Part shown: in pieces, positions 14,501 to 40,374 of the stretch
How the letters are laid out: each line of letters begins with the position of its first letter
How positions within the stretch are numbered: the stretch's first letter is position 1
Assembly: GCF_035594765.1 (NCBI RefSeq)
Contig: NW_026943822.1
Coordinates: 2,446,992-2,510,991, forward strand
Origin: Anolis carolinensis
Lineage: Eukaryota
Direction of reading: 5' to 3'
Length of the DNA: 64,000 bases
Position numbers and translations under genes: made by a program
The notes under the pieces: model-generated
What the model saw: only the letters and a program-made list of their open reading frames with translations
The model's database searches: none
Told to the model about the DNA's origin: nothing

Positions 14501-17500
14501 TGGCAGAATTGACCTCTTGAATTAGGTAACAACAACAACAACAACAACAACAATAATAATGTATAATTATATAATGCTAGCTGTGCCCGGCCACGCGTTG
14601 CTGTGGCGAAGTCTGGTGGTATGGGAAATAAAGTACAGTAGAGTCTCACTTATCCAACACTCGCTTATCCAACGTTCTGGATTATCCAAGGCATTTTTGT
14701 AGTCAATGTTTCCAATATATCGTGATATTTTGGTTCTAAATTCATAAATACAGTAATTACTACATAGCATTACTGCGTATTGAACTACTTTTTCTGCCAA
14801 ATTTGTTGTATACATGATGTTTTGGTGCTTAATTTGTAAAATCATATCCTAATTTGGTGTTTAATAGGCTTTTCCTTAATGCCTCCTTATTATCCAACAT
14901 ATTCGCTTATCCAACATTCTGCCGGCCCGTTTATGTTGGATAAGTGAGACTCTACTGAGCAATTGGTGGTAGTTAGGGTAAAGGGTAAAGGTTTTCCCCT
15001 GACATTAAGTCCATTATAAATGGGTTCTATAGCTGTGTGGAAGGGCCTTGAGTCTACACTGCCATATAATCCAGTTAAAATCTGATCATCTGTATTTTGT
15101 AGGCAGTGTGGAAGAGGCCTAAGTGAGGCCTAACTCTGCCTGTCCCCTGGGCTGAGTGGGTTGCTAGGAGACCAAGTGAGCGGAGCTTAGCCTTGTAACT
15201 GGCAGCAATGGGCTAAAAACAATTATTCTTCTCCCTGTAATTAGGACTTTATATTTCTTTTCTTTTTGTTGTATGAACGCAGAGGCATGGATGAGGGGTT
15301 GTGCTGCCAAGTTTAGTGTTTCTGGGATGTGTAGTTTTGTTGTTTTGTCCTAGGCCGAAATTTCATTACCCTTTTATATATATAGATATAAATATAATAT
15401 AATAATATATAAATATAATAATGTAAATTTTATGTATGTATGTATGCATACATGTATGTATGTATGTATGTATGGAGCCCCGGTGCGTTAAAGCATTGAG
15501 CTGGAGACCGAAAGGTCCCAGGTTCAATCCCCGGGAGCGAAGTGAGCGCCCGCTGTTAGCCCCAGCTCCTGCCAACCTAGCAGTTCGAAAACATGCCAAT
15601 GTGAGTAGATCAATAGGTACTGCTCCGGCGGGAAGGTAACGGCGCTCCATGCAGTCATTCTTGCCACATGACCTTGGGAGGTGTCTATGGACAACGCCGG
15701 CTCTTCGGCTTAGAAATGGAGATGAACACCAACCTCCGGAGTCGGACACGACTGGGCTTAACGTCAGGGGAAATGTGAGTAGATCAATAGGTGCTGCTCC
15801 AGCGGGAAGGTAATGGTGCTGCATGAAGTCATGCCAATGGCCACATGACCTGGAGATGTCTACGGACAACGCCGGCTCTTCAGCTTAGAAATGGAGATGA
15901 GCACCAACCCCCAGAGTCAGACATGACTGGACTTAACATCAGGGGAAAACCTTTTAACCTATGTATGCATGTGTGTGTATATAAAAAGGTAAAGGTAAAA
16001 AGGCATGACTGCATGGAGCGCTGTTACCTTCCCATCGGAGCGGTACCTATTGATCTACTCACATTGTCCGTAGACACCTCCAAGGTCATGTGGCCACTGG
16101 CATGACTGCATGGAGTGCCGTTACCTTCCCATCGGAGCAGTACCTATTGATCTACTCGCATTGTCCGTAGACACCTCCAAGGTCATGTGGCCACTGGCAT
16201 GACTGCATGGAGCGCGGTTACCTTCCCATCGGAGCAGTACCTATTGATCTACTCGCATTGTCCATAGACACCTCCAAGGTCATGTGGCCACTGGCATGAC
16301 TGCATGGAGCGCGGTTACCTTCCCATCGGAGCGGTACCTATTGATCTACTCGCATTGTCCGTAGACACCTCCAAAGTCATGTGGCCACTGGCATGACTGC
16401 ATGGAGCGCGGTTACCATCCCATCGGAGCAGTACCTATTGATCTACTCGCATTGTCCGTAGACACCTCCAAGGTCATGTGGCCACTGGCATGACTGCATG
16501 GAGCGCGGTTACCTTCCCATTGGAGCGGTACCTATTGATCTACTCATATTGTCCGTAGACACCTCCAAAGTCATGTGGCCACTGGCATGACTGCATGGAG
16601 CGCGGTTACCTTCCCATCGGAGCGGTACCTATTGATCTACTCGCATTGTCCGTAGACACCTCCAAAGTCATGTGGCCACTGGCATGACTGCATGGAGCGC
16701 GGTTACCATCCCATCGGAGCAGTACCTATTGATCTACTCGCATTGTCCGTAGACACCTCCAAGGTCATGTGGCCACTGGCATGACTGCATGGAGCGCTGT
16801 TACCTTCCCATCGGAGCGGTACCTATTGATCTACTCACATTGTCCATAGACACCTCCAAGGTCATGTGGCACTGGCATGACTGCATGGAGCGCTGTTACC
16901 TTCCCATCGGAGCAGTACCTATTGATCTACTCGCATTGTCCGTAGACACCTCCAAGGTCATGTGGCCACTGGCATGACTGCATGGAGCGCGGTTACCATC
17001 CCATCGGAGCGGTACCTATTGATCTACTCACATTGTCCATAGACACCTCCAAGGTCATGTGGCACTGGCATGACTGCATGGAGCGCTGTTACCTTCCCAT
17101 CGGAGCGGTACCTATTGATCTACTCACATTGTCCGTAGACACCTCCAAAGTCATGTGGCCACTGGCATGACTGCATGGAGCGCTGTTACCTTCCCATCGG
17201 AGTGGTACCTATTGATCTACTCGCATTGTCCGTAGACACCTCCAAAGTCATGTGGCCACTGGCATGACTGCATGGAGCGCGGTTACCATCCCATCGGAGC
17301 AGTACCTATTGATCTACTCGCATTGTCCGTAGACACCTCCAAGGTCATGTGGCCACTGGCATGACTGCATGGAGCGCTGTTACCTTCCCATCGGAGTGGT
17401 ACCTATTGATCTACTCACATTGTCCGTAGACACCTCCAAAGTCATGTGGCCACTGGCATGACTGCATGGAGCGCGGTTACCATCCCATCGGAGCGGTACC

Positions 17501-19581
17501 TATTGATCTACTCACATTGTCCGTAGACACCTCCAAAGTCATGTGGCCACTGGCATGACTGCATGGAGCGCTGTTACCTTCCCATCGGAGCGGTACCTAT
17601 TGATCTACTCACATTGTCCGTAGACACCTCCAAGGTCATGTGGCCACTGGCATGACTGCATGGAGCGCTGTTACCTTCCCATCGGAGCGGTACCTATTGA
17701 TCTACTCACATTGTCCATAGACACCTCCAAGGTCATGTGGCCACTGGCATGACTGCATGGAGCGCGGTTACCATCCCATCGGAGCGGTACCTATTGATCT
17801 ACTCACATTGTCCATAGACACCTCCAAGGTCATGTGGCACTGGCATGACTGCATGGAGCGCTGTTACCTTCCCATCGGAGTGGTACCTATTGATCTACTC
17901 ATATTGTCCGTAGACACCTCCAAGGTCATGTGGCCACTGGCATGACTGCATGGAGCGCGGTTACCATCCCATCGGAGCGGTACCTTTTGATCTACTTGCA
18001 TTGTCCGTAGACACCTCCAAGGTCATGTGGCCACTGGCATGACCGCATGGAGCGCCGTTACCTTCCCGCCGGAACAGTACCTATTGCTCTACTCACATTG
18101 GCATGTTTTCGAACTGCTAGGTTTGCAGAAGCTGGAGCTAACAGCAGACGCTCACTCTGCTCCCCGGATTCAAACCTGTGACCTTTCAGTCCGCAAGTTC
18201 GGCAGCTCAGCACTTTAACACGCTGCACCACGGGGGGCTATGATTCTAGCTGCTCACAAATGAACCAAGGGCGCATGGGCTCCTTGCTTCCCTCCCAGGC
18301 CTTTGGAGACCGTTCCCTGTCAGCATCCCATGTTCTCAATGCTGGACTACAGTTCCCATCACTCTTGCTGCTGGTGGGCCTTTTTGGGCACCCAAATGGG
18401 AGTCCAGCATGGGATCTGATGCAGCCAGGCCTTCACAGAAATAATAAACCATTAAGTGTAAGAGAAGGAGCTGCGTGCCTGAGTCAATTAGCGGAGAGGC
18501 TAATCCCCGGGATCTCTCTCTCTCTCTCTCTTGCGGGGCAGATCATGGCCGTAATCCGCACGTGGGGCCTGGCACCCGACCCTTGAGGGCGGCAGGGGAC
18601 TCCGCGTTGTGGGAAGGAGGTCAATGCTGCAGGGTCAGGTGGGAAGAAGGAAAAGCGGACCAGAAAGAAGGCAGGAAGGAGACCCCAAGAAGGGGCTGAA
18701 GTTTCAGAAGAAAGTTTTCAGAAATGGGTCATGCAGGCCTGGGCAAACTTCAGCCCTCTGGGTGTTTTGGACTCTAACTCCCACAATTCCTAACAGCCGG
18801 TAGGCTGTTAGGAATTGTGGGAGTTGGAGTCCAAAACACCCAGAGGGCTGCAGTTTGCCCAGGCCTGGGTGATAGTATTTCCAGGCAAAGTAATATGTAC
18901 ACTAACAAGATAGATATGCTGGATTTCGTATCAAAAAATCACAAGTCAAACACTTCCCAAGTGTCTAGGACTGTGTGATGTATTTTCGGATGATGCGCGC
19001 AGATCCCAGCAGGGTGGCCTTTTGCAGTTGGCAGATCGTAATTTTGTCAGTGTCTATTGTTTCCAAATGCCGGCTGAGATCTTTTGGCACGGCACCCAGT
19101 GTGCCCATCACCACCGGGACCACCTGCACTGGTTTCTGCCAGAGTCTTTGCAGTTCAATCTTGATGTCCTGATAGCGGCTGAGTTTTTCCTGTTGTTTTT
19201 CGTCAATGCGACTGTCACCTGGGATGGCGACATCAATGATCCAAACCTTTTTCTTTTCCACCACTGTGATGTCTGGTGTGTTGTGTTCCAGAACTTTGTC
19301 AGCCTGGATTCGGAAGTCCCACAGTATCTTTGCATGCTCATTTTCCAAGACTTTTGCAGGTTTGTGATCCCACCAGTTCTTTGCTGCTGGGAGGTGGCAC
19401 TTGAGGCATACGTTCCAATGAATCATTTGGACCACATAGTTGTGCCTCTGTTTGTAGTCTGTCTGTGCAATTTTCTTACAGCAGCTGAGGGTATGATCAA
19501 TGGTTTCGTCAGTTTCCTTGCACAGTCTGCATTTTGGGTCATCAGCTGATTTTTATAATAATAATAATAATAATAATAATA

Positions 19582-19620
<39 letters not shown>

Positions 19621-22600
19621 GTTATATTGTTAGTAGATTTAAGGGTCGGGCCCTTCTTCTCCTCCTCCTTCTCGGTTGCAGATCTGCTGCTGCTGTGGGC
19701 CGGCCCCGTGCGGCCTGTGCTGCCCCTCCTGCCCCAGCATCAAGGCCTCCACCGGCACCCGCCTCCTCTACATGCTCTTCCACATCTCCGCCTGCGGATG
19801 CTGCTGCGTCATGCTCTCCCGCACCGTGGCCAAGGCCATCGAGGAGAACGTGAGTGGGTCCGGAGGGAGGTGGAGGAGCCACCGCGGAGGGTCCGTGGCG
19901 TATGTGTTCATACGTGTGCGCCACCTCTTCCTTCTCCCCAGGTGCCTTTTTACGCAGTGCTGTGTGAACACCTCCCGGGGGGCTCCGACTGCGACATCCT
20001 GGTGGGCTACTCGGCCGTCTACCGGGTCTGCTTCGGCACCGCCTGCTTCTACCTGGCCCAGGCCCTCTTCCTCCTCAACGTCAAGTCCAGCAACGAGTTC
20101 CGGGCCCTTCTGCACAACGGGTGAGGGAGGGGCAAAAGAAAGGAGGGAGGGCGCTTCCTGCCTTGGCACCTCCATCACTTTGAAATATTAAACATTAACT
20201 AAGTCGTTTTAATTACAAAAATGGGAGTCGAGCTCTGAAAGGGTTAAAATAGGCGCAATGACTCAGCAAAAGCTGCAGTTCAATCTAAGCAGGTAGACCT
20301 CAGTGTGAGAGAGGCCTCAGTGTGTGACGCTCCAGTGTGAAGGCTGCTGTGTGTAAAGCTACTGTGTGGGTTCGGTGTGAGAGGAGGCTCTGTGAGAGCG
20401 AAGCTGTTTATCTGCATGAGAAAGAAGCCCAGCGTGGAAGCAAAGAACTTTATTATTATTATTATTATTATTATTAAACTTTATTTGTACCCCGCTAGCA
20501 TCTCCCGAAGGACTCGATGCGGCTTACAAAGGCCAAGGCCTCAACACACAATATAACAATACAAAACAAAAGGCAAATTAAAAACAATTAAAACAGTATA
20601 AGCAACAAGCAATAAACAATATGCTAAAACACAATAAAACTGGGCTGGGCCAGAGTAATGGGTACAAGATTAAAAGTGCTGATGTGACAGGTGATATATA
20701 AGGCTTCTAGGGCAAGTGCAGAGTGCGATATACGATCTTAGTTCTAATAAAGTGCTTATGGGACTTGGTATTGGAGATTTCCTATTAATTTATTTGTGTT
20801 ATTATTATTAATATTATTATTTATTTACAGTATCTATATTCCACCCTTCTCACCACGAAGGGGACTCAGGGCGGATCACATCTATCTATATATATAAATG
20901 AGTGATGGCATCACGGCGACCAACAAAACAACAAATCTACAGGCCCCCAACCTCAAAATTTGACAACACAACCCATCATCCATGCCTCTAGGTTGATACA
21001 ACAAAAAGAAAAGAAAAATAAAGTCCTAATTAGAGAGAGAGGAATAATTGCTTTTATCCAATTGCTGCCAGTTAGAAGGCTAAGCTCCTCCAACTTGGTC
21101 TCCTAGCAACCCAATAAAAAATAACAAACACTACAAAAATTAAAAAACACTAAAAATTAATACAATAAAATACCACAATAACAAAAAATAACTAAAAATT
21201 ATACAAGAAAATAATAAAATATAATAAATTAAAAGATAACTTACAATAAAATTAATTAAAAAAATACAAATAACGTCAAATAAAAATTACACAACAATTT
21301 TTAACCAATACCACCACCACTTTGCCACAGCAACGCGTGGCCGGGCACAGCTAGTTACATATATAAGGCAAACATTCAATGCCTTATGAATTAGTCTCTT
21401 GTTTTAATATTGTATGTTTTTTGTATGCTTCTTGCTGATTTTAACGATCGTTTTATTGCTATTGATGTTTTACTGGTATAATTGTTTTCTTGTCGTGTTA
21501 TTGATATTGATTGTTTTATCGGGCTTGGCCCCATGTAAGCCGCCCCGAGTCCCTTCGGGGAGATGGGGTGGGGTATAAAAATAAAGTTATTATTATTATT
21601 AACATAGAACAAAGACAGAGACAAAGGTAGGCCTCGAAATCATGACCTCTTGGTCAGAGTGATTTGTTGCAGCTGGCTGCTCACCAGCCTGCGCCACAGC
21701 CCGGGCCTTGAAAACACACAGCCCAGGTTATGGAAACCTTATTTTTGTAAACAGAACAACCGTATTATTTTGCTACAAAGCCTCCTAAGGAAGAGATAAC
21801 ATTGGTCTGTGTGTTTGTGTTCTTTTGATCACTTTGGGCTACTGGAGCTGGGCCATACTGTTACTATAAATTATACGTTTATGGAGGGTCTTTTGTTAAG
21901 AAGCCCACACGCCCAACAGCTGTGTCTGTGTTGCAGGTTCTGGTTCCTGAAATTCCTCATCCTGGTCGGACTGTGCGCAGCAGCCTTTTTCATCCCGGAT
22001 CAGCGTTTCATCCAAAGTAATGAATCACGTATGCGCATGCTCATACTGCTGTCCACTCTCGGTAGAGCAGGTATAGGTAAGCTTCGTTTCTCCAGGTGTT
22101 TTGGACTCCAACTCCCACCATTCCTAACAGCCTCAGGCCCTTTCCTTTTCCCCCTCAGCCGCTTAAGCGGCTGAGGGGGAAAAGGAAGGGGCCTGAGGCT
22201 GTTAGGAATGGTGGGAGTTGGAGTCCAAAACACCTAGAGAACCCAAGTTAGCCCATACCTGCTCTACCAAGAGTGGACAGCAGTATGCAGTAGAGGAATG
22301 GGTTGTATGTGGGCACATGATGCTGGGAGCTGGGTGTGTATCTTTCCCTAAAAATGACCCAAATCACTTGATTTCTTGCCTGATGCCACCTTCCCCTAAT
22401 GCACTGTCCTCGGCAGCCTGGCACCTGGTTGGCGTCTGCGGAGGGTTTGCCTTCATCCTGGTGCAGCTGGTGCTGATCACGGCCTTTGCCCACACCTGGA
22501 ACAAGAACTGGTGAGACCTGGAGAAGGTGTTAAGTGTGGATGGGGAGGAGGAAGGGGACGGGGGTCCCAGCCTTGCTCTTGTCCCACCCTGCCAGGTTGA

Positions 22601-25600
22601 CAGGGGCCGCCCAGGACAAGCGCTGGTACCTAGCCGTGTCCATGGCCACGCTGGGCTTCTACGCCGCCGCCTCCGCCGCCTTTGCCCTCCTCTACAAGTT
22701 CTACACGCACCCGGGTGGATGCAACCTCAACAAGGGCCTCCTGACGGTCAACGCGGGACTCTGCCTCCTCATGTCCTTCACCTCCATCACGCCCTGCGTC
22801 CGTTACAGTGAGTGAGGTTGGGGAGGATTAAGGGGTGCCTAGTCCCGTGTGTGGGCAGACGGGGGTCTCGGATGATGCCCTTTGCAGAGGCACTTGTCAG
22901 AGGATGATGGGGTGCAGAGTGGATTCCAAAAATTCATCATCCCGGTCTCACCTCCTTATCCAGACTGTCTTCCCTTGTGGAAAAACAGCACTGGTCAAAC
23001 ACACTCCAGCAGACGAGGGTTCGGTTGAAAATCCAACGGCAATAAATCTTTATTTACATAACTATATACAAATAGAGCAAATCAGTCCTTTCTCCGTGAG
23101 TGCTCACGCTGAAGCAATTCACACACACACACACAGGAAACTCCTCTGCATTCCACAGTCCAAGAAGGATGTCCCGGTCAAAACAAACTTGACCCCATTG
23201 GTCCTGTGATACGTCAGTCATAGCAGGTTCTCATTAACTCCATAACTACTGGAATGCCTTGCCAAAAACTAACACAGAAGGCATTTCTAACAACCCAGAT
23301 TGATTTTAACATTTCACAGTACACAATACCCTGACAGCACTGACCCTCCCGCCCTTCCGGCAGGGCAGCCGCGCTCCAGCCCTTTGCAGGCCTCCATCAT
23401 CTGCTGTTACGTCATGTACCTGACCTTCTCGGCGCTCTCCAGCCGGCCGCCGGAGAAAGGTGAGTGAGTGGGCCCTGGCCTTGACTGGCGGGAACAGGCC
23501 TGTTGCTGCTGCAAGCACTATCCATGACAAACCACTGCCCCTCTGCCCAGTGCAATACAGGGGCCAGAACCTCACCATCTGCTTCCCCGGCGTCAGCAAG
23601 GACGGCATGCAGACCGAAGACACTACAGTGGCTGTCCTGGGAGCAGCCTTCATGTACACCTGCGTCCTCTTTGCCTGGTGAGGAAAGAAGGGGGGTGGCT
23701 GGCACATATATCCTTACAACAACACCCAGAAGCACAGGGAGGGGGGTCTCCTCCAAGTAATCTCACCAACACAAAGGCTGCAACCCACACAACAAAGTTG
23801 ACAGACCCAGTTTTTTGAACTGAACATGCCTACCTGTCTATATATATATAAAAGAGTGATGGCATCACGGCAGCGGACAAAACAACAAAAATAAACACCC
23901 CACAACCTCGAAAATTGACATCACAACCCCTCATCCATGCCTCTAGGTTTATACAATAAAAAGAAAAGAAAAATAAAGTCCTAATTAGAGGGAGAGGAAT
24001 AATTGGTTTTATCCAATTGCTGCCAGTTAGAAGGCTAAGATCCTCTCACTTGGTCTCCTAGCAACCCACTCAGTCCAGGGGACCCTTTACCTTACCTACC
24101 ACCAATTCCTCAATACTTTATTTCCCATACCATCATACTTCGCCACAGCAACGCGTGGCCGGGCACAGCTAGTATTTTATAATGTGTTTTATGAATACTG
24201 ATGTAAGTTAATAATAATTTTTTAACTTATTTATATTGCACTGTATAATTTTTATATATGCGTTTTATTGTAAGCCGCCCTGAGTCCCCTGTTGGGTGAG
24301 AAGGGCGAGATATAAATATTGTAATAAATAAATAAGGTTCATCAGCCTCTAGCAGTTTCACCAATGTTGCTTCCAGCAACTAACCGATCCAGCCTCCAGC
24401 TACTTCTGCCACTTTCCCAAGTGATCCCACCTGTTGGCCTTCCTCTGAGCCAACCAATTAGACCTCCTCAGTTGAATGGCATCAGTCCTTAATTGCAGCC
24501 TAGCTAGAATAGTTTCTGGTTTGCTTCCTGAAGCCCCTGACTGTGCATCTCTATCTCCTTGGAGCTGCTGCTCCTGCTCTGCAGAGGTGCATTTCTCAGT
24601 ATCAGGCTGCTCATTCTGCTGATCTATGTTTGCCCCTGACTCAGAGGCTGGGCCAAAGAGTCCTTCCCCTTGTAGGGCACGGGCTGGGTCTCATAATGAC
24701 GTCTGTCCTGAGCGAAAAGAGCCTTCCTGGGAGGGGTTTGGGGGTGCTGCTCACCTTCTGGGTGGGTTCCTCTATGAACTGCAGCCAGCCTCTGGTCCCC
24801 CGGCTGCAGGGTTTCAAGTGCGGCCGATGCATAAACACCCTCGGCCTCACCCTTTTCCCTCCTCCAGCAATGAAGCCTCGCAGCTCGCTGGCATGTTTGG
24901 GCCCCTGTGGATGGTCAAGATCTACAGCTTTGAGTTTAAGGTGAGTTGGGGTGTGTGTTCCTTCTCTTCCTTTTGCCACACATTGATTCCCTTCAGCATC
25001 TTCTGTCGGGTGCGAATCTGCTTATATGTGCAACCTGTCCGGGGGTGAGGGGTCATCTTCAGGTGACTCTGTGCTTTCATTCATTCCCTGCAGAATCCCT
25101 CCTGCTGCTTCTGCTGCCCAGAGAAGATGGAGGAGGAGCTGGCAGGTGAGTGATGAAGGTCAGGGTTATTATTATAATATTTATATTTATTTATACCTTT
25201 TTTCTTTCCTTCCTCTCTGGGGCTCAGAGGCGGCCCTAGGTAATTTCGCCTTGTAGGTGGACCTAGTGGCTGCGCCCCCCACCCCAAAACTGCGCCCCCC
25301 CCAAGGCGCCGCACATACCTTCGGTGGTGGCGGCAGTGGGGACCATCGTCTCCCTCCTCGCCAAATGCGGAAGGCCTCAACTGAGGCCTAGCTCTTCTTG
25401 CGAGGTCTCTTGAGTTCGGCGAGGAGGGAGCCGATGGTCCTCGATGGCGCCCCCAGGGACAATGCGCCACAAGCAGGCGCTTACATTGGCCTCTATGTTG
25501 GGCTGGCTCTGCTGGGGCTCCCGCCCTCTAAGCCCTCCTCTCTTTTGTTGTTGTTTCTCTGGATCAGGCCAGGAGGCCTCCCTGGCGGGGCAGAAGGTCG

Positions 25601-31024: not shown

Positions 31025-34000
31025 TTATGGGGCAGAAACCTCTGGCTGCAAAGGGGAGAGCAAAGGGTGCGAATCCAGCCGGCTTTGCAGCCACCCAAAA
31101 GCCCGCCGTGGTCATGCCGAGATCATTGGCGCCAGTGGGGATTGGCACCAGAGGTTGCCTCTCCTGCCTCCAAGAGGATGGGGGGTGATGCCATGGGGCC
31201 CCTCCCTTTGCCCAGGCGACTAACCTGAGGGCCGTGAGCCCCGGGCGTGGCTGGGGAGTCCTCTTGGAGGGCCGGGCTGGACCCCTTCTGTTCCCTTTGC
31301 TTCCTGGCCAACTTGGAGAGCTCAGCGTGGATGGTCTGCAGAAGGGGCAGAAAACAAGAAGAATACAATCTCTGAGGACACCTGCCATAGATGTGGGCGA
31401 AACGTCGGGAGAGAATACTTCTGGAACATGGCCATACAACCCGGAAAATATACAACAACTCTGTGATCCTGGCCGTGAAAGCCTTCGACAACACAAGCTG
31501 AAGTGAGTTACTTGGCAAATCCAACTCAAGGTGTTAGTAGTGCTCGACAAAGCCCTACTAGTTTGAAACCCAACTTTCTTGGTTCTGAACTCCCAGGGAT
31601 TTACGACTAGGCGTGGGAAGACACTATGAAATTCGCAAGGTCTTAGAATAATAGAGTTGGAAGAGACCTCGCAGGCCATCCAGTCCAACCCCATTCTGCC
31701 AAGAAGCAGGAAATCGTATTCAAAGCACCCCTGACAGTTCTGCGAAGGCAAGGTTGGGTGATGGCTGAATTCCCTTGCATGGAAACAAGGCATGTTTTTA
31801 GTCCTAGTTGTGATGATTTAACTCTGGCACTGGATGCCATACCAAGATAATCTCACCCCAACACTTGCCCTGAATCCTGTATTCAATTTGTAACTGGATG
31901 ATTGACCAAACCCAAAAGGTGCTCATCAATGGGTCTTCTTTATCCTGGAGAAAAGGGACGAATGGGGGGCCACAGGGTTCTTTTCTAGGCCCGGTGCAAT
32001 CCAACATTTTTATAGATGACTTTCTATGATGGAATAGAAGGCTTGCCAGAGTGAGTGACCCTTTGCTAGCCTTCCTGGAGGACAGGCAGGGAGTGTCAGG
32101 GTATTGTGTATTGTGAAATGTTAAAATCAATCTGGGTTCTTAGAAATGCCTTATGTGTTAGTTCTTCGGCAAGGCATTTCAGCAGTTATGGAGTTAATGA
32201 GAGTCTGCTATGATTAATGTATCACAGGACCAATGGGGTCAAGTTTGTTTTGACCGGGACTTACTTTCTTGTTCCTGTGGAATGCAGAGGAGTTTCCTGA
32301 GCAGTGTGTGTGTGTGTGCATGAGTCGCTTCGGCAAGAGCACTCGTGGAGGAAAGGACTGATTTGCTCTGTTTGTATATAGTCATGTAAATAAAGATATA
32401 TTGCCGTTGGATTTCCAACCGAACCCTCGTCTGCTGGAGTGTGTTTGTCCAGTGCTGTTTTTCCACACGGGGAGACAGTCTGGAGAAGGAGGTGAAGACC
32501 GGGATGGTGAATTTTTGGATTTCACTCTGCTACCCATCATCCCCTGACAGGGAGGGCACGGTCCCCCAGTTCCATGGATGGAGGGGGGAGCAGCGGAAGA
32601 AGGGGTCCCTTCGCCCCAATCCTTCACCTGCCCTACAGGCCCAGGGCGCTCTGGATTCCCTGCCGCCGCCCTCCTCACCTTTGTGGCCGGGTCCAGGTGG
32701 AGGGCCCGCTTCAGGACCGCCATGGCCGCCTGGTCCTCCCCCTGCTCAGACAGCAGCTGCAAGGAAGACAGCACAGGGATGAGGATGAGAAAGATGTCCG
32801 TTTATTTATATCCCACTTCTCCTCTCCACAACGGAGGCTCAAAGTGGCTACAGAGAAAACTCAACATTATGGGGATCTCAAAATTATAAATAATAATAAT
32901 AACAATAACAAGACGACCGCAGTACAAACTAGAGCTGACAGCTAGCACAACAAAACATTACATGGGAAGTTCCTTGACAAAATTGAAGGAAAAGCTGACA
33001 AGGAGAAGACCTGGCTCTGGCTCACGAATGGGACCCTGAAGAAGGAGACAGAAGGCCTGATCCTTGTAGCCCAGGAGCAAGCCATCAGAACAAAGGCAAT
33101 TAAGGCCAAGATCGAAAAATCAACTGATGACCCAAAATGCAGACTGTGCAAGTAATATTACATTTAATGTATAATATATATGTTATTAGATTGTATTATT
33201 ATTAGTATAATATTATATTACATTATAACATTATTATCAATATTATATGTATATAATATTTGCACTTTTTACCTTTGTGAATTTGATATAGACAAAGGGT
33301 CTATTCCCATCCCAATTTGCACTTCCAAGAATTTGCAGCACTTTTATCAGTCACATCGTGTTTACAATATTTATATGGTGCACCTTACCCATTCTACTTT
33401 TACAAACTCTCCGTTTTAATCCATGTTTTTATTAGCTCTTGTCATTTGTTTTTATTGGCTAATGTTTAAATTTTTATAATTGTGCATGTCTCTTGTCTAT
33501 TGTTGTGTTTTATATTGCTATTGTTTTTATTCGGGCTCGGCCTCATGTAAGCCTCCCTGAGTCCCCTTTGGGGAGATAGAAGCAGGGAATAAAAATAAAG
33601 TTCTTCTTATTCTTACTTCTTATCCTTCTTCTTCTTATTATTATAATATACAATATATTATATATTTATAAATTATTGTATCTATATATATGTGTTCTGA
33701 CCGTTTTTACCTTAAAATAAACAAAGAATCTACAACACCCAGAACCACAAAATTAAACAACACAACCCAACACCCTTGCGGCTGGGTTTAAACAACTAAG
33801 CCACAATTCAAATCAAGATCTGTCGCCCACACAAACCCAAACACACACAAAAAAGATGTGTGCTTGTATTACATATATATGTATATAAAATTAGCATAGC
33901 ATGTTGCTATTGGCACAGGAGACAAGATGGAACTATCCGTTGGATTTTTGGTTGTGTGTATATGAAATGTAAATCAAGTGTTTCTGCTGTTTTGCAAGTG

Positions 34001-37000
34001 TGTTTCAGCAATGAAACAGTTAACAGCAGGCCAGTTTGACTGATAGCCTGCTGTGACCTATGAGACATGATTTCCGGCCTTGGAGGTCGGAACTTCCTTC
34101 GGACTAAGGAATGTGTTTTCTTATCTCTCTGTTGTACTGTGGGAGACGAGACGAGCAGAAGAATGCCGGCTTCTAGCGATGGGATTTGCTAATTGTAAAT
34201 ATCTCTGTAAATATTAAATAGATGTTTGAACTTCAGATGTCTTTGTCTGACATTGGAGGAATTGGTGAGGGCAGAAGTTCACCAATTCGTCAAGGTGATG
34301 GTCCGGAGCACGATTGATCGATGGTTTTGAAGAAACCCACCAACGCGCACCCTGAACCTGGCTCTGCATTATGACATGATCTTCCTGGCTCTCAGGTTGG
34401 TATAAAGTTATTCAATTCTATTCTATGCCGGCCCTACCTTGCCTTTCCGGAAGAGTGCCTTGACATTGTCGGGGTCCAGCTGCAGGACCCGGTCGCAGGA
34501 CCCCAGGGCCTCCTCCGGCTGCTGCAGCTTCATCTGTGCAGCCGCAGAGTTGTTGAGGCATTTGAGCTCCAGGTCTCGCTGCTCCTCTTCCTCCTCGGGG
34601 CTCAGGGTGCCTGCGGAAGGGCCGCACAAGGGCCTCACCCCCAGGCAGGCAGAGGCCTGGCCAGGAGCCCCCCACTCATCTCCAGGCTTTGGGGTCTGAG
34701 CTACCTCCCTTCCTTCCAATGTGCCAAAGCTCAACTGCCTCTGAAGAGCCCAGATCTTGGGACCTAGTTAGGCTGGGGCCTAGTGTTTCAGGTCCCAGGG
34801 GCCTCACCTTCCCCTGGCAAGAGCAGCAGCTGTAGGGCCTCCTGGTAGCAGCGCAGGGCCCGCTGGAAGTCCTCCCTCTCGAAGTGGAAGTTGCCCCACT
34901 CCCGCCGACGGTTGCACAGTCCGAAGCGCTCTGAGGCGGTCAAGAGAGCCGGATTGGGACCATCCTGCACCTGCAGCAGGGTCACCTCATAGAGCAGAGT
35001 GGCGTTGGGGGGAATGTCAGGCTCCCTGCAGAGGAGGAGGAGGAGGAAGAACGTGTTTGGGGTGGTCCATTGATTCCACCCCCAGCCCCTTCTTCCCTGG
35101 ACAAAAGGGCCTTACCTGCCCAGAGAGCCATAGGCACAGGTTGGGCTGACCAGAAAAAGGGCGACCTCTCCCACCTGCATGGAGGGGACAGCAAGCTCCA
35201 GGGCCTGAGGAAGAGGAGGAGAAGGGTCAAGGGGAGGGAGAGCAGCCACGAGCCCAGCCCCGGGAGGCCCCCTTCGTAGCCGTTGCCCCCACAGGCTGTG
35301 CAAAGGCTGTGGTCCAAAGACCAGCAGATACACCACTGAGAGGATGCCCAAAACACGGGAGGGCCAAGAGGCCTGTTATTTGAAAACAACTGCACCCAGT
35401 CTCCGGACACATATCCTTTTGGAAATAAACGGCAGTCATAACCTTGTGGAAAAGGGAAATGATGTCATACCCGTTTGGCAAATGTGAATCTCCATGAACA
35501 TGTGGAGACCACCTTTTGAAAACCTCTAGTCAAGAAAAGCATGACCTTATTAGATGTCAATTCTTTGAACAAGTGATATTCATAAGCATTCATGTAATGG
35601 CACACAGGTAACTCCGCTGTTAAACTGTCTTTGAACAGCCAAGGATAAAAACATGCCACTACAGAGGATGGATAGCAGAGGAGGGTTATACAGTAGAGTC
35701 TCATTTATCCAACACTCGCTTATCCAACGTTCTGGATTATCCAACGCATTTTTGTAGTCAATGTTTTCAATACATCATGATATTTTGGTACTAAATTCGT
35801 AAATACAGTAATTACAACATAACATTACTGCGTATTGAACCGCTTTTTCTGTCAAATTTGTTGTGTAACATGATGTTTTGGTGCTTAATTTGTAAAATCA
35901 TAACGTAATTTGATGTTTAATAGGCTTTTCCTTAATCCCTCCTTATTATCCAACATATTCACTTATCCAACATTCTGCCGGCCCGTTTATGTTGGATAAG
36001 TGAGAGTCTACTGTAGCTGAAATTGCAGTTGTAATTGTAATTGCAGTTGGACTTGTCCAGAACATATACACTCCCCTTTAAAAAACCTTTTAAAGTATGC
36101 ACTCAGAGGGTTGTTGTATGTTTTCCAGGCTGTCTGGCCATGTTCTAGAAGTATTCTCTCCTGACATTTCGCCGACATCTATGGCAGGCATCCTCAGAGG
36201 TTGTGAGGTATGGAGAAACTATATATTAAACTTATATTTACCTTCCTTGCTTAGTTTCTCCATACCTCACAACCTCTGAGGATGCCTGCCATAGATGTGG
36301 GCAAAACGTCAGGAGAGAATACTTCTAGAACATGGCCATACAGCCCGGAAAACATACAACAACCCTGTGATCCTGGCCATGAAAGCCTTCGACAACACAT
36401 ATGTACTCAGAGATAAAAAGAAGCCTTTTTTGAAAAATAACACATCTTGTTTACTCATAAGCATTTCGTATTACTTCACCATACAGGCACATCTCTTATT
36501 GAAGTTTAGTTACAGATAGGATGTAGTTCTCTGTGTGTTTAGTACACAGGGTATCATTCTTAATCAATAGTTCATAGTTTTTAGGTATAGCTGTACTCAC
36601 TGAAGTCCATAAGTGCAAACAGCAACATGCATCAGCTTGTTGCATCATACTAAGGTGTGATGCAAACATGCATCTACCTCCACCAAGGCAAAAATGGGCA
36701 TGATCAAAAACAAAGATGGCAAGGACCTAACAGAAGCTGAAGAGACCAAGAAAAGGTGGTGAGAATATACAGAAGATCTGTATAGGAAGGATAATAATAT
36801 AGAGGATAGCTTTGATGGTATGGTGAGTGAATTAGAACCAGACATCCTGAGGAGTGAGGTTGAATGGGCCTTAAGAAGCATTGCTAATAACAAGGCAGCA
36901 GGAGAGGACGGGATCCCAGCTGACCTGTTTAAAATCTTGAAAGATGATGCTGTCAAGGTGATGCATGCCAAATGCCAGCAAATATGGAAAACACAAGATT

Positions 37001-37968
37001 GGCCATCAGATTGGAAAAAATCAATTTACATCCCCATACCAAAAAAGGGAAATGCTAAAGAATGCTCAAACTTCCGTACAGTGGCACTTATTTCACACGC
37101 CAGTAAGGTAATGCTCAGGATCCTGCAAGGAAGACTCCAGCAAGACATGGAGTGAGAGGTGTAAAGCAGACTGACTAAAAAATTGAGTCCCGAGTCTGAA
37201 CATGCTCAGTATAATCACGTCTATAACACCTGTTAAAGAGGTGCAGTCAAACTGGCAAATTAACATATACATAGAATACAGGTTAGCAAATATATATGTT
37301 AACAAATAAATAGTGCAAGGTTTGGGAGGTTGCGATTTCCAATGCCTGTGGCCATCTGCCACCTCCTCATCCGCCCCCGTCCTTCTTGTATTCAGAGGCT
37401 CACGCTCACCTGGATGGCCTCCCATTGGCCCAGGACGAAGGTCAGCCGGGGGTCCCTCTCCACCAGGCTCCCGTCCTCCAAGGCGCCCAGCAGCTTCACG
37501 GCCATTTCCTGCCCCGCCTGCGGCCGGCTACCATGGCCCTGCTTCACCAGGCACTTCCTCAGGCACTTCCCTTCTGGGGGGCAAAGGGAGTGGGTCAGAA
37601 AAGTCATATGTAGAAGAGCCCCCCACCCATCCCCTCCATCCCCCACTATACTCACCAGCAAGGTCCTCCCAGTCACCCGCCTCCCACAGCGCCTGGAAGC
37701 TTCCGTTGGGGCCCATCAGGTGCTCCAGGCGCCGGTAGAAGGCCCTCTCCTCTTGCTGGGGGGCAGGCGCTGGGATGGAGGTGTGGGGCAGAGAGAACTG
37801 GACCCTGCGGGGCAGGCGGGGGCTGCTTCGGGACCCCGGACCCCCACGGGGTGATAGCGAAGGTGGAGGTGAAGGTGGCAGGGGCGAGGTGAGCCCCGTC
37901 CCGGCTTCTTCTCCCACCTCTGACGGGCCCCGCGGCCCCTCCGGCATCAGCCGGCGGTCCCCCTCCAT
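31025..37968 (-). CDS. FKBP8-like FKBP-type PPIase/TPR protein, about 388 aa; exons 37968-37656, 37573-37410, 35204-35116, 35025-34808, 34610-34438, 32756-32679, 31335-31225 and 31045-31025 (last exon tentative)
   Basis: FKBP domain (..[75 protein letters not shown]) and TPRs ([41 protein letters not shown]) closely parallel FKBP8. Introns are GT-AG and in phase. Confidence 0.88.
32094..32549 (+). mobile_element. Solo LTR in the FKBP8-like gene intron 6
   Basis: TGTCAG...CTGACA termini, 5-bp TSD GGGAG and an internal AATAAA. Confidence 0.85.
36105..36400. mobile_element. Inverted pair of Penelope terminal repeats with degenerate hammerhead motifs
   Basis: About 36105-36221 is reverse-complementary to about 36252-36366. 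Confidence 0.75.
36665..37155 (+). mobile_element. RTE/BovB LINE internal fragment
   Basis: [63 protein letters not shown]. Confidence 0.9.
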
Positions 37969-38059
37969 GGCCCCCCTCCGTCGGCACCAAGGGGCCCTGT
38001 GTGGCTGGAGTGCAGGAGCCAGGATGGCAGCAGAAGCAGCGGCAGAGGGAGGCTGAGCG

Positions 38060-38495
38060 GCTGCTAATGCAATTAGGGCCTCAGCTGGCGATTATAGAGT
38101 AAGCCCTTCTCGCCCCCGCTGCTGCCGGCGCTTGCACGCTCCCCTCCAGACCCAAGTGGGCCACCCTCAAGGAAGCTCTGAGGGATGGGCCAGCGGGGTA
38201 GAGTGGCCCTTGCCCTTCCTGTGGACCCCAAAAGCCAGAGGAGGAGAGAGCAAGGAGGCTCGGGCTCAGCTTTCCTGGCTGGGAATCATCCCCGACATTT
38301 CCAACTGGCCACTGCCCTCAAACTGTACCTCCGCTTGTGGGTTTCCATAAGCCCACCCCCCCATTGCTAATTGTACAGCAACATCTGGCCTGATGGGGTT
38401 CCTCTGGAGGGATGCTGAAACACACACACACACCCCGCCTTGATTTGGCTGGCAGATTAGAGACTAATGCCCATGGCTCTAATAGGCTTAGCAAG
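38060..38495 (-). promoter_or_regulatory. Putative promoter of the FKBP8-like gene with a homeodomain motif cluster (CAATTAG x2, TAAGCC x3, CTAATC) and a TATA-like TATAAT
   Basis: CAATTAG 38070-38076, CTAATTG 38367-38373, TAAGCC 38100-38105 and 38348-38353, GGCTTA 38485-38490, AGATTAG 38454-38460. Confidence 0.5.
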
Positions 38496-40374
38496 AGGGG
38501 CACGTGGCCAGTTAGCCTGGGCTGGCATGGGGCTGAGGAGGGGGGCAGAGCGGGCCTCTAGGGCCCCTTCCCCTCGTGGCAACTGGGCAGATGCCGGTGA
38601 CTGCCGAAAAAGCTCTGCCCTGCCTGCCTGCGGGAAAAAAACCCTCTTGGCAAGAGGAAACCAAGCAGAAGAGCCCCAGGGATTCAAAAATCAGAACAGT
38701 AAATAAGAAGCAACACTTAGGAACTAGGGGCAGCTAACAAAGGATGCTCCCAGGCAGAAAGTAGCCAGTAGATGAAGCCATTCAATGCAAATTAGGGTGA
38801 TTAACTGCAACATTCACACTGGCCTCCAACTGACAAGAGTTCTTCCCCGAACCTGGACTTCCCACAGATATATATAAACCTTATTTATTTACTTACAGTA
38901 TTTATATTCCGCCCTTCTTTCTCACCCCGAAGGGGACTCAGAGCGGATCACATTATACATACATAGGGCAAACATTCAATGCCCATAAACACATCAAACA
39001 GAGACTGAGACAGACAGACGCAGAGGCAATTTAACCTTCTCCTGAGGGGATGTTCAATTCTGGCCACAGGGGGGAGCAGCTGCTTCATCATCCACTCTGA
39101 CGGCACTTCCTCATTCCAGGTTGTAAATTAGTTAACCTTGCCTCCCCACTTTTTTTTAATAAGTGGTACCTTATTTCCTACTTGATAGATGCAACTATCT
39201 TTCGGGTTGCTAGGTCAGCAATGAGCAGGGGCTATTTTTTATTTTTAATTGACAGGTGCTCACCCCGCCACGGGCTGGCCTCGAACTCATGACCTCATGG
39301 TCAGAGTGATTTATTGCAGCTGCTCAACAGCCTGCGCCACAGCCCGGCTTCCTTGCTTAGTTTCTCCATACCTCACAATCTCTGAGGAAGCCTGCCATAG
39401 ATGTGGGCGGAACGTCAGGAGAGAATACTTTTAAATCATAGCCATACAGCCCGGAAAACATACAACAACCAAGCCCCAGGGAGCCTGGTTCGGGAGATCA
39501 GTCCCAGGCCCAGGGGAGAGTCCGGGGCTAAAAGGGAAGCCTGCACCCGGGCCCCATAGGCTTTGGGCTCCATCCATCCTTGAAAAGGGGCCAACACATT
39601 TTTGAATCAGGTCAAAAGATTCCCCCGGCCTCTGAAGGGACAAGACAACCAGCCATCCTGGCGCCAGGTGGAAAAGGCAAAGGTGTCTGCCCTTGGAATC
39701 AGGCAAAGGGAGGGTGCCAATACAACTCAGCATGGAAGTCGTGGGAGGGTGGTGAGCCAGCCTATTTCAATGCAGGATGATGGGAAGGAGAAGGGCAGGA
39801 GAACACTCTTCCCCCAACCCTTCCAGCCTCTGCTGCTCCGTAACCAACTCTTCCGCAAAATCTCATCTCCCAAACTAAGCACATGCGAAGTGTGGGTGAC
39901 AATGAAATCCTCCCTTCCTGAAACAGGGCTGGAGCAAAACACCAGGAAAGGGGCACACAGCAGCCCCAGCTTCCGATGCCCCACCAAGGGCCTCAGGGCA
40001 CCCCTCCCAGAGAACCTCCTAGGTAAGAGCGGGCACAGCAGCATCACACAAAAGCAGGTAAGTGGGGGCCTAAAGGGGTATTTTATTGATCCTCTCCTCA
40101 AAATGTACAAAAAATTAGAAAACAAGCCCCCCACCCTCCCACAAACATTAACCAGTCCAGGGCACCCACAGCGAGCGCGGTGGCCAAGAGGCGAGGAGGC
40201 ATGGCCAAGTGGTGGTGCCCTTGGCCCGGCCCTCCTCGGCCGCTCCCGCTTCACTTTCAAGGACGGAGGTTGCGATGGCGGGACAAAGGGACCGGCCTCC
40301 GCGCTCAGGGGCCACTGGGCTCCTCCGCAGGCAAAGTGACAGTCGAGGCAAGCCCCCCTTCCTCCTCCTCCTCC

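Follow-up and report, generated by a model that had tools for sequence, protein, structure and literature searches.

The window analysed here is a 64,000-nucleotide (nt) stretch of the Anolis carolinensis genome (contig NW_026943822.1, positions 2,446,992 to 2,510,991). On its minus strand, between 37968 and 31025, lies a gene with an FKBP domain and three TPR motifs. Because the protein tree and the gene order agree, we take the locus to be the A. carolinensis orthologue of FKBP16, the sister gene of FKBP8/FKBP38; on this evidence the RefSeq name 'FKBP8' is wrong. The explanation we favour, and regard as likely as a whole, is that this FKBP16 orthologue encodes a soluble Hsp90 co-chaperone without a membrane anchor, under the control of paired-type homeodomain factors.

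The gene and its transcripts

We built the gene model from open stretches and splice sites on the minus strand. It has eight exons, every intron is GT-AG, and the product has 388 amino acids:

37968-37656, minus strand: exon 1, opening with the ATG (37968-37966); N-terminal region rich in Pro and Ser, including the FKBP16-specific motif (RVxF-type core)
37810-37830, within exon 1: the FKBP16 N-terminal motif (residues about 54-87 of P0153)
37573-37410, minus strand: exon 2, first half of the FKBP domain
35204-35116, minus strand: exon 3, middle of the FKBP domain
35025-34808, minus strand: exon 4, completes the FKBP domain (Arg189); linker; TPR1 (clamp residues Arg230, Asn234)
34610-34438, minus strand: exon 5, TPR2 and start of TPR3, with clamp residues Lys278, Asn281, Asn282, Asn310, Lys312, Arg316 and Lys319
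32756-32679, minus strand: exon 6, TPR3
31335-31225, minus strand: exon 7, TIHAELSKL helix, then a polar tail to ..GAHGPQ
31224-31123, minus strand: retained intron 7 of isoform X1 (..VSRLGKGRG...PHWRQ, stop at 31125-31123)
31045-31025, minus strand: exon 8, PEVSAP and TAA, a short squamate terminal exon

An earlier note on this stretch, made from its letters, had described an intact 8-exon FKBP and TPR gene with two alternative 3' ends. The exons are where it placed them, and both ends are RefSeq isoforms. The spliced model (..GPQ/PEVSAP, then stop) is identical to XP_062819690.1 (P0153), "peptidyl-prolyl cis-trans isomerase FKBP8 isoform X2", and the end ..PHWRQ, produced by retention of intron 7, is isoform X1 (P0266, 415 amino acids). 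The gene is therefore already annotated in databases. P0153 served as the reference sequence for all later comparisons. It matches the Pfam families FKBP_C (60.5 bits, cut-off 21.1, residues 121-206) and TPR_1 (62.1 bits, cut-off 27.8), and its best solved relative is FKBP8 (5mgx, E 8e-69, aligned over residues 99-371). Searches of Pfam and PDB with single exons also returned the FKBP domain and TPR motifs, with FKBP8 as the nearest natural solved protein. The relatives used below were reached by a search with exon 4, which led to a Sceloporus protein of 418 amino acids (P0002) that seeded the word search.

Four runs (X4, X6, X12 and X14), coded and without tissue labels, were aligned to positions 34300-38600. 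They can be taken as RNA since the unique parts of intron 2 were uncovered in the examined runs; X4 looks like DNA or unspliced material. Spliced contigs joining exons 2 and 3, in part continuing to exon 4, were found in X6 and X12 (record 4 of X12 joins exon 3 to exon 2), and exon 1 was covered by contigs of X12 (37666-37893) and X6 (37634-37799). Record 24 of X6 is 364 nt long, with 175 nt on exon 5 (34438-34612) and another 189 nt that equal the summed length of exon 6 (78) and exon 7 (111); it thus appears to end at the end of exon 7, where the RefSeq isoforms diverge. Several small runs (49-126 million letters) contained 66-76% of the sampled words of exons 3-5, and none of these words occurred in five larger runs of the species that are guessed to be RNA. 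That small runs assemble the mRNA while larger ones lack it suggests an expression restricted to certain samples. Two parts of intron 2 (35600-36460 and 36750-37180) had very high contig depth in all four runs, which marks high-copy repeats; the intron includes an inverted pair of short interspersed elements (about 36120-36400) and a fragment of the reverse transcriptase of a long interspersed element (about 36650-37140).

Orthology and gene order

We computed a maximum-likelihood tree of 50 proteins (quick search), with invertebrate FKBP8-like proteins as the outgroup. It comprised 33 rows of the FKBP16 group, eight of FKBP8, eight of the invertebrate outgroup, and one unplaced protein (P0038) that grouped with the outgroup. 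The FKBP8 rows were seven fish proteins, five of them from species carrying both genes, and the first 262 residues of mammalian FKBP8; they included no sauropsid FKBP8, and in a word search for tetrapod FKBP8 started from P0122, the best 120 matches contained no FKBP8 other than that of fish. The Shimodaira-Hasegawa-like approximate likelihood ratio test gave a support of 100 to the FKBP16 clade, which contains the anole gene with all 33 rows, of 94 to the FKBP8 clade, and of 97 to the separation of both from the invertebrates. Branching within the FKBP16 clade mostly matched the species tree. The anole gene did not group with FKBP8, and its neighbours are PDIA3, SERINC4 and MFAP1. These results uphold two proposals of the earlier note, that the gene is a paralogue of FKBP8 and that it is orthologous to the fkbp16 of teleosts.

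Both genes occur in gar, bowfin, pike, grass carp and zebrafish, and FKBP16 and FKBP8 are probably ohnologues. The relatives of the anole gene are named 'FKBP8-like' in lizards, turtles, crocodilians, birds, frogs and salamanders, and 'FKBP prolyl isomerase 16' in sharks, chimaera, gar, bowfin and teleosts. We give virtually no credence to a one-to-one orthology with mammalian FKBP8: it would fit the label 'FKBP8' that RefSeq gives to the orthologue in Anolis, Pogona, Alligator and Caretta, and the identity with fish FKBP8 (42-46%), which is near that with fish FKBP16 (44-48%), but it is contradicted by the fully supported place in the FKBP16 clade, by the neighbours (elsewhere also ELL3 and SERF2) and by the five fishes that carry both genes.

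FKBP16 was found in lizards, birds, crocodilians, turtles, amphibians, coelacanth, and ray-finned and cartilaginous fishes. It had been described as retained in reptiles; it is present there, but is no speciality of theirs, and as far as the sequences sampled tell, the gene is vertebrate-wide outside mammals. The best 120 matches (E down to 8e-77) included 13 lizard species and no mammal, as the earlier note had expected, and no snake either. The gene may have been lost in snakes.

The order of genes in the window and at the comparison loci is as follows (signs give strands in the window, arrowheads the direction of each gene elsewhere):

Anolis carolinensis: MFAP1 (+), SERINC4 (+), FKBP16 (-), PDIA3 (-), ZIP transporter (-)
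Anolis sagrei and Pogona: PDIA3 >, FKBP16 >, < SERINC4
Podarcis: PDIA3 >, < ELL3, FKBP16 >, SERF2-like >, < SERINC4
Emys: < ELL3, FKBP16 >, SERF2 >, < SERINC4
Accipiter: PDIA3 >, FKBP16 >, SERF2 >, < SERINC4
Danio: < ELL, fkbp16 >, serf2 >

In Elgaria, SERF2 flanks FKBP16 and SERINC4 lies downstream. Fish, turtle, bird and lizards thus have gene order in common, and by this comparison the ancestral place of FKBP16 is between ELL3 and SERF2. The gene had been thought to occupy the slot where mammals have ELL3 and SERF2. This proved mistaken: it replaces neither, and normally stands between them (Podarcis, Emys, Danio). ELL3 or SERF2 was located at the comparison loci at L002:4366-9247 and 17232-18464, L004:1-9115 and 21005-23270, L005:15585-16226, L006:12281-12794, and in L007; neither was found in L001 and L003. 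No relic of the two genes was detected in the whole window (the positive control worked), and neither was found at the loci of A. sagrei and Pogona, which suggests loss or relocation in Iguania. Two bird models (P0180 and P0211) fuse FKBP16 with the downstream SERF2, and one of them is named 'small EDRK-rich factor 2 isoform X1'.

Loss of the C-terminal anchor

The C-terminal transmembrane (TM) tail anchor, the ancestral state of FKBP8 and FKBP16, is missing from the anole protein. We surveyed about 120 C-termini by their best 18-residue Kyte-Doolittle mean. Neither annotated end of the anole protein has a hydrophobic segment, in line with the one reported as missing after TIHAELSKL: the best value within the last 45 residues was -0.76, compared with 1.98-2.9 in anchored orthologues. 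The latter come from cartilaginous fishes, sturgeon, gar, bowfin, teleosts, coelacanth, frogs, salamanders, several turtles and alligator, and at their ends a hydrophobic stretch precedes (A/T)R(N/S/G), as in ..WKFLLGALVVALGSLVTSVVLTARN and its relatives. Proteins without anchor were found in every sampled squamate (end ..APQ(P/R)S) and in every sampled bird (end ..PAPPAAEGA). Some turtles have RefSeq isoforms of both kinds.

All mapped orthologues share the 8-exon plan, and only the last exon varies. In Emys it encodes the anchor and measures 87 nt; in four lizards its length is 21-30 nt, and in the hawk (Accipiter) 37 nt. We searched for an anchor exon that the annotation might have missed. 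In five squamates, Emys and a hawk, all three frames downstream of exon 7 were scanned for TM-grade stretches as far as the next gene. In squamates this returned only open reading frames that were of low complexity or antisense to SERINC4, and there was none before SERF2 in Elgaria or the hawk. Searches by tblastn with the Emys and alligator proteins gave no match to the anchor downstream in the squamate loci. A profile built from 40 anchor exons recovered the Emys exon (E 2e-18), with no match in squamates or the bird. These searches bear out the claim that no downstream exon encodes an anchor, at the five squamate loci and at the hawk locus.

Other candidates for a remnant of the anchor were discarded. 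Use of an alternative acceptor at 31163 would give a tail with a hydropathy of 1.16, a Lys and several Pro, and a profile score of -1.8 bits, and it is not in the same frame relative to exon 7 in the two Anolis species. At the DNA level, squamate exon 8 matched the 3' end of the turtle anchor exon only over 22 nt in Pogona (E 7). The alternative exon of turtles that lacks the anchor (..WMDPSSPQLFKDTS) was not found within 5 kilobases (kb) downstream of Emys exon 7. That we have overlooked an anchor, either in an unannotated exon or behind acceptor 31163, is thus extremely unlikely. The coexisting turtle isoforms would allow it, and the 31163 frame is mildly hydrophobic and ends in AARG like shark anchors; but that frame falls short in hydropathy, profile score and conservation, the exon searches above were negative, the tiny last exon and its splice site are conserved in four lizards, and the 364-nt contig seems to stop where exon 7 does.

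The anchor is kept in turtles and alligator, which are more closely related to birds than to lizards. Parsimony on these sequences therefore points to two separate losses, in squamates and in birds, and to the soluble form as the derived state in both. Since some turtle isoforms also lack the anchor, a dual state, soluble and anchored, may be old in sauropsids.

Hsp90 clamp, FKBP domain and N-terminal motif

In FKBP38 the MEEVD peptide of Hsp90 is clamped by Arg225, Asn229, Lys273, Asn276, Asn277, Asn305, Lys307, Arg311 and Lys314, and the substitution K307E abolishes binding (PMC5344419). All nine residues are kept in the anole protein (Arg230, Asn234, Lys278, Asn281, Asn282, Asn310, Lys312, Arg316 and Lys319), and nearly all of the 36 FKBP16 rows have them too. 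In birds, Lys307 is replaced by Arg and Lys314 by Gln in five of six proteins. The Arg184 that occludes the pocket of the FKBP domain in FKBP38 has an equivalent (Arg189 in the anole) in 36 out of 36 FKBP16 rows. We propose that lizard FKBP16 would be a soluble cytosolic TPR co-chaperone, docking on the C-terminal MEEVD of Hsp90 through its fully conserved dicarboxylate clamp. Because the pocket-occluding Arg is invariant, its FKBP domain probably resembles that of FKBP38 in having no constitutive prolyl isomerase activity (regulated or inactive).

The N-terminal third of FKBP16 is poorly conserved save for one motif, RRVQF.LPHT.I...EE..FY..LE. Its strict form, [RK]x[VI]xF.LP...EE..F[YF], was matched by 87 out of 120 FKBP16 proteins, including that of the anole, and by none of 120 FKBP8 proteins; teleost FKBP16 carry the variant KMVRFQDP. 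We propose that this motif would recruit a further partner. RVxF is the docking consensus of proteins that bind PP1, and the core of the FKBP16 motif fits it; recruitment of PP1 is possible, and we offer it as a lead.

Conserved sites upstream of the gene

The homeobox-type motifs named by the earlier note are present upstream of the ATG at the places it gave. CAATTAG occurs at 38070-38076 (plus strand) and 38367-38373 (minus strand), TAAGCC at 38100, 38348 and 38485, and TAATC at -126 and -491 from the ATG. A palindrome, TAATGCAATTA (hereafter P3), lies at 38065-38075. Both strands of the window hold 9 CAATTAG and 30 TAAGCC in all, corresponding to about 0.07 and 0.25 expected per 530 base pairs (bp). 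The sites form three groups:

38448-38495, minus strand: distal cluster (-524 to -480 from the ATG), GCTAAGCCTATTAGAGCCATGGGCATTAGTCTCTAATCTGCC, a P3-like TAAGCC-TATTA with TAATC; TAAGCC at 38485-38490
38348-38373, minus strand: middle pair, TAAGCC at 38348-38353 and CAATTAG at 38367-38373
38053-38123, minus strand: proximal module (-155 to -85), GCAGCGGGGGCG..GGGCTTACTC-TAATCGCC-(18 nt)-TAATTGCATTAGCAGCCGCTCAG; TAAGCC at 38100-38105, TAATC at about 38090-38094, P3 and CAATTAG at 38065-38076

Two of the three groups are conserved among lizards. In the proximal module TAAGCC, TAATC and P3 follow one another within 60 bp in the order TAAGCC-TAATC-TAATTGNATTA. The block is common to A. carolinensis, A. 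sagrei, Pogona, Elgaria and, without TAATC, Podarcis, with the consensus GCAGC.GGGGCG..GGGCTTACTC-TAATC(G/C)CC-(about 18 nt)-TAATTG(A/C)ATTAGCAGCC.CTCAG. P3 itself was present in all six aligned species (five squamates and Emys), and none was found in the hawk within 4 kb upstream. In a footprint test allowing at most one mismatch, eight 10-mers of Anolis recurred in all of Pogona, Elgaria and Podarcis (0.03 in shuffled sequence), and all eight fall in the proximal block. The distal cluster has a footprint at -524 to -520, and its core, CTAAGCCTATTA followed after 20-30 nt by TAATC(C), is common to A. carolinensis, A. sagrei, Pogona and Elgaria. The canonical TAATCC was found only in Pogona and Elgaria, and is absent in Anolis. 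The claim that the motifs are conserved in squamates therefore holds for the proximal cluster and for the distal TAAGCC with its neighbouring TAATC, but not for the middle pair (38348/38367), which has no footprint and is not conserved beyond Anolis, CAATTAG being gone already in A. sagrei. The Elgaria model P0152 (649 amino acids) starts too far upstream, and its annotated ATG precedes the conserved P3 site by 82 nt.

The conservation of part of these sites among lizards indicates that the clusters are probably functional. That Anolis and Pogona retain them although ELL3 has gone from the locus points to FKBP16 as the gene they serve. We propose that transcription would depend on paired-type homeodomain factors acting at the two lizard-conserved clusters, with the TAAGCC and TAATC(C) sites as predicted binding sites of K50-type factors and the P3 palindrome TAATTGNATTA as that of Q50-type factors. 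Such control would predict expression restricted to certain cell types.

RNA contigs extend over this region. One contig of X6 covers 37897-38145, from exon 1 through the proximal cluster. After a gap, an isolated transcribed block (38328-38494) spans the distal cluster in X6, X14 and X4, at a depth of 48 in X14, above that of the exons of the gene. An Rfam scan of 37900-38700 gave nothing near the gathering score and did not explain the transcribed blocks. Three readings of the isolated block are conceivable: an enhancer RNA, an exon upstream of those described, or divergent transcription from the side where ELL3 once stood.

Which tissue the sites serve

The combination of a PCE-1-type element and K50 sites, near each other and conserved, is open to more than one reading. 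The sequence TAATTGAATTA is the generic optimum of Q50 paired-like dimers (PROP1, HESX1, ALX, ARX, PHOX2, VSX and others), and TAAGCC is also a PITX site. The same types of site serve PITX and PROP1 in the pituitary, OTX2 and VSX2 in bipolar cells, and PITX, ALX and PRRX in mesenchyme. It is a serious possibility, if not a probable one, that the sites drive expression in the pituitary (PITX with PROP1/HESX1), in bipolar cells (OTX2 with VSX2) or in cranial or limb mesenchyme (PITX/GSC with ALX/PRRX), or that they are left over from an ancestral bidirectional promoter of ELL3 and FKBP16. The site types fit all these factors equally well, but nothing points to any one tissue. As to a leftover promoter, ELL3 stands head-to-head with FKBP16 at an upstream distance of about 750 bp in Podarcis and about 890 bp in Emys, and the Danio gene is likewise upstream and on the opposite strand, at a distance of nearly 8 kb; the modules nevertheless persist in Anolis and Pogona, where ELL3 is missing from the locus.

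The earlier note had read the sites as photoreceptor-style and the protein as a soluble co-chaperone of retina, pineal and parietal eye, similar to AIPL1 and driven by CRX/OTX and RAX. We find this possible but on balance doubtful. The sites are real and partly conserved: P3 holds the PCE-1 core and is flanked by K50-type TAAGCC and TAATC (TAATCC in Pogona and Elgaria). PCE-1 is common in the regulatory regions of photoreceptor genes, and Rax binds it, as do Vsx2 and Erx (PMC5166794), so that the combination of K50 sites and P3 is not specific to photoreceptors. The apparently sample-restricted expression and the absence of mammals and snakes from the best 120 matches would also suit a gene of light organs. 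Mammals and snakes lost many light-organ genes. The generic nature of TAATTGAATTA and of TAAGCC weighs on the other side, as do the lack of the canonical CRX site TAATCC in Anolis and the RNA contig running through the proximal sites, which may lie downstream of the start of transcription. Alligator, moreover, keeps the gene, though crocodilians have no pineal organ.

A bolder version, which we consider improbable, would make FKBP16 a scaffold of light organs that docks on Hsp90 and possibly recruits PP1, controlled by OTX/CRX and RAX in the photoreceptors of retina, pineal and parietal eye. It would have been freed from the membrane independently in squamates and birds, and its apparent absence in mammals and snakes would stem from nocturnal or burrowing bottlenecks. 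If true, these would be the same bottlenecks that removed many non-visual opsins.

Weighing the explanation

Several observations count against our explanation of a soluble, homeodomain-controlled FKBP16. The absence of the gene in mammals and snakes rests on the best 120 matches and not on genome searches. Binding to Hsp90, solubility and isomerase inactivity are all read from sequence. In Podarcis and Emys the upstream interval is shared head-to-head with ELL3, and the sites could have served that gene. The contigs show neither starts nor strands of transcription, and since one of them spans the proximal cluster, part of what we call the promoter may lie in the 5' untranslated region. Intron 4 (34611-34807) is retained in contigs of X6, X12 and X14 at about half the depth of the neighbouring exon contigs, and with such contigs in three RNA runs, part of the message may be unproductive; reading through intron 4 would lead to a stop codon. 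Ratios of nonsynonymous to synonymous substitution rates (dN/dS) of 0.25-0.35 indicate moderate constraint only. Finally, exon 8 of A. carolinensis stops three codons early (..SAP, TAA), which is specific to this species; in A. sagrei, Podarcis and Pogona the exon continues to the conserved end ..APQ(P/R)S.

Some of these points could suggest a gene decaying in squamates, with loss of the anchor as the first step of pseudogenisation and a product whose function is no longer maintained. The early stop in exon 8, the retained intron 4, dN/dS values of up to 0.36-0.40 in some regions and the snakes missing among the best 120 matches are what such decay might look like. We think it very unlikely, since dN/dS stays well under 1 whichever region and pair is compared. 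The two Anolis, Podarcis and Pogona retain an intact reading frame and all their splice sites, and the exons were found by tblastn in Elgaria. The divergence of these lizards exceeds 150 million years. Clamp residues and upstream footprints are kept, and spliced mRNA could be assembled from small runs. Pairwise dN/dS of 0.16-0.36 in the FKBP and TPR regions is consistent with FKBP16 being under moderate purifying selection.

The earlier note is thus partly supported: it was right on paralogy, on fkbp16 orthology, on the absence of an anchor and on the homeobox sites, and too narrow on distribution. A search of the literature for the vertebrate gene found no paper, and turned up only plant FKBP16 and an old alias of AIP. 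The gene is known to databases, but no paper was found on the double loss of the anchor, on the conserved regulatory modules or on the N-terminal motif particular to the family. Much work has gone into FKBP8/FKBP38, which is tail-anchored and regulates mitophagy, apoptosis, and mTOR and Hedgehog signalling. Its vertebrate-wide sister gene, not seen in mammals, is now given an identity and a gene neighbourhood, and the name 'FKBP8' in four RefSeq species can mislead work based on orthology. With an anchor apparently lost twice, in squamates and in birds, and the Hsp90 clamp kept, FKBP16 would be a natural experiment, for which the conserved upstream clusters offer candidate regulatory elements.

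Comparison with known systems

The closest systems are the FKBP16 of fishes and the 'FKBP8-like' proteins of amphibians, turtles and crocodilians, known from database annotations. They are orthologous to the anole gene and share its 8-exon plan and its core of an FKBP domain and three TPR. They also share the N-terminal RVxF-type motif and the neighbours of the family, ELL3 upstream and SERF2 downstream. They differ at the C-terminus, where these proteins end in a TM anchor (..WKFLLGALVVALGSLVTSVVLTARN) and those of the anole and all other squamates in a short polar tail, encoded in lizards by a last exon of 21-30 nt. Bird FKBP16 ('FKBP8-like', 366-396 amino acids) also lacks the anchor; in the hawk Accipiter the last exon is 37 nt long, and the sequence up to SERF2 contains no anchor exon. 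The bird tail differs from that of lizards (..PPSPGAPAPPAAEEEA), and the loss would be independent by parsimony. Birds further depart from the lizards in the clamp (Lys307Arg and Lys314Gln in five of six) and, in the hawk, in having no P3 within 4 kb upstream.

FKBP8/FKBP38 is a tail-anchored Hsp90 co-chaperone of mitochondria and endoplasmic reticulum (PDB 5mgx, PMC5344419). The anole protein resembles it in domain order, in the nine clamp residues and in the pocket-occluding Arg, but is the product of a paralogue and has no tail anchor. The region after TIHAELSKL, which in FKBP38 contains the second calmodulin site, is unrelated in the anole protein. The Glu-rich N-terminus of FKBP8 with its ..LPPLED.. 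motif is also missing; the FKBP16 motif RRVQF.LPHT stands in its place.

Membership of the AIP family was considered and rejected: the only match was a weak one to the TPR (4aif, E 0.01, exon 5), and all strong matches were to FKBP8, FKBP4 and FKBP5. AIP and AIPL1 are soluble Hsp90 co-chaperones made of an FKBP-like domain and TPR, and AIPL1 is specific to photoreceptors. By analogy, their soluble FKBP-type domain joined to a three-TPR clamp suggests how an anchor-less FKBP16 might function.

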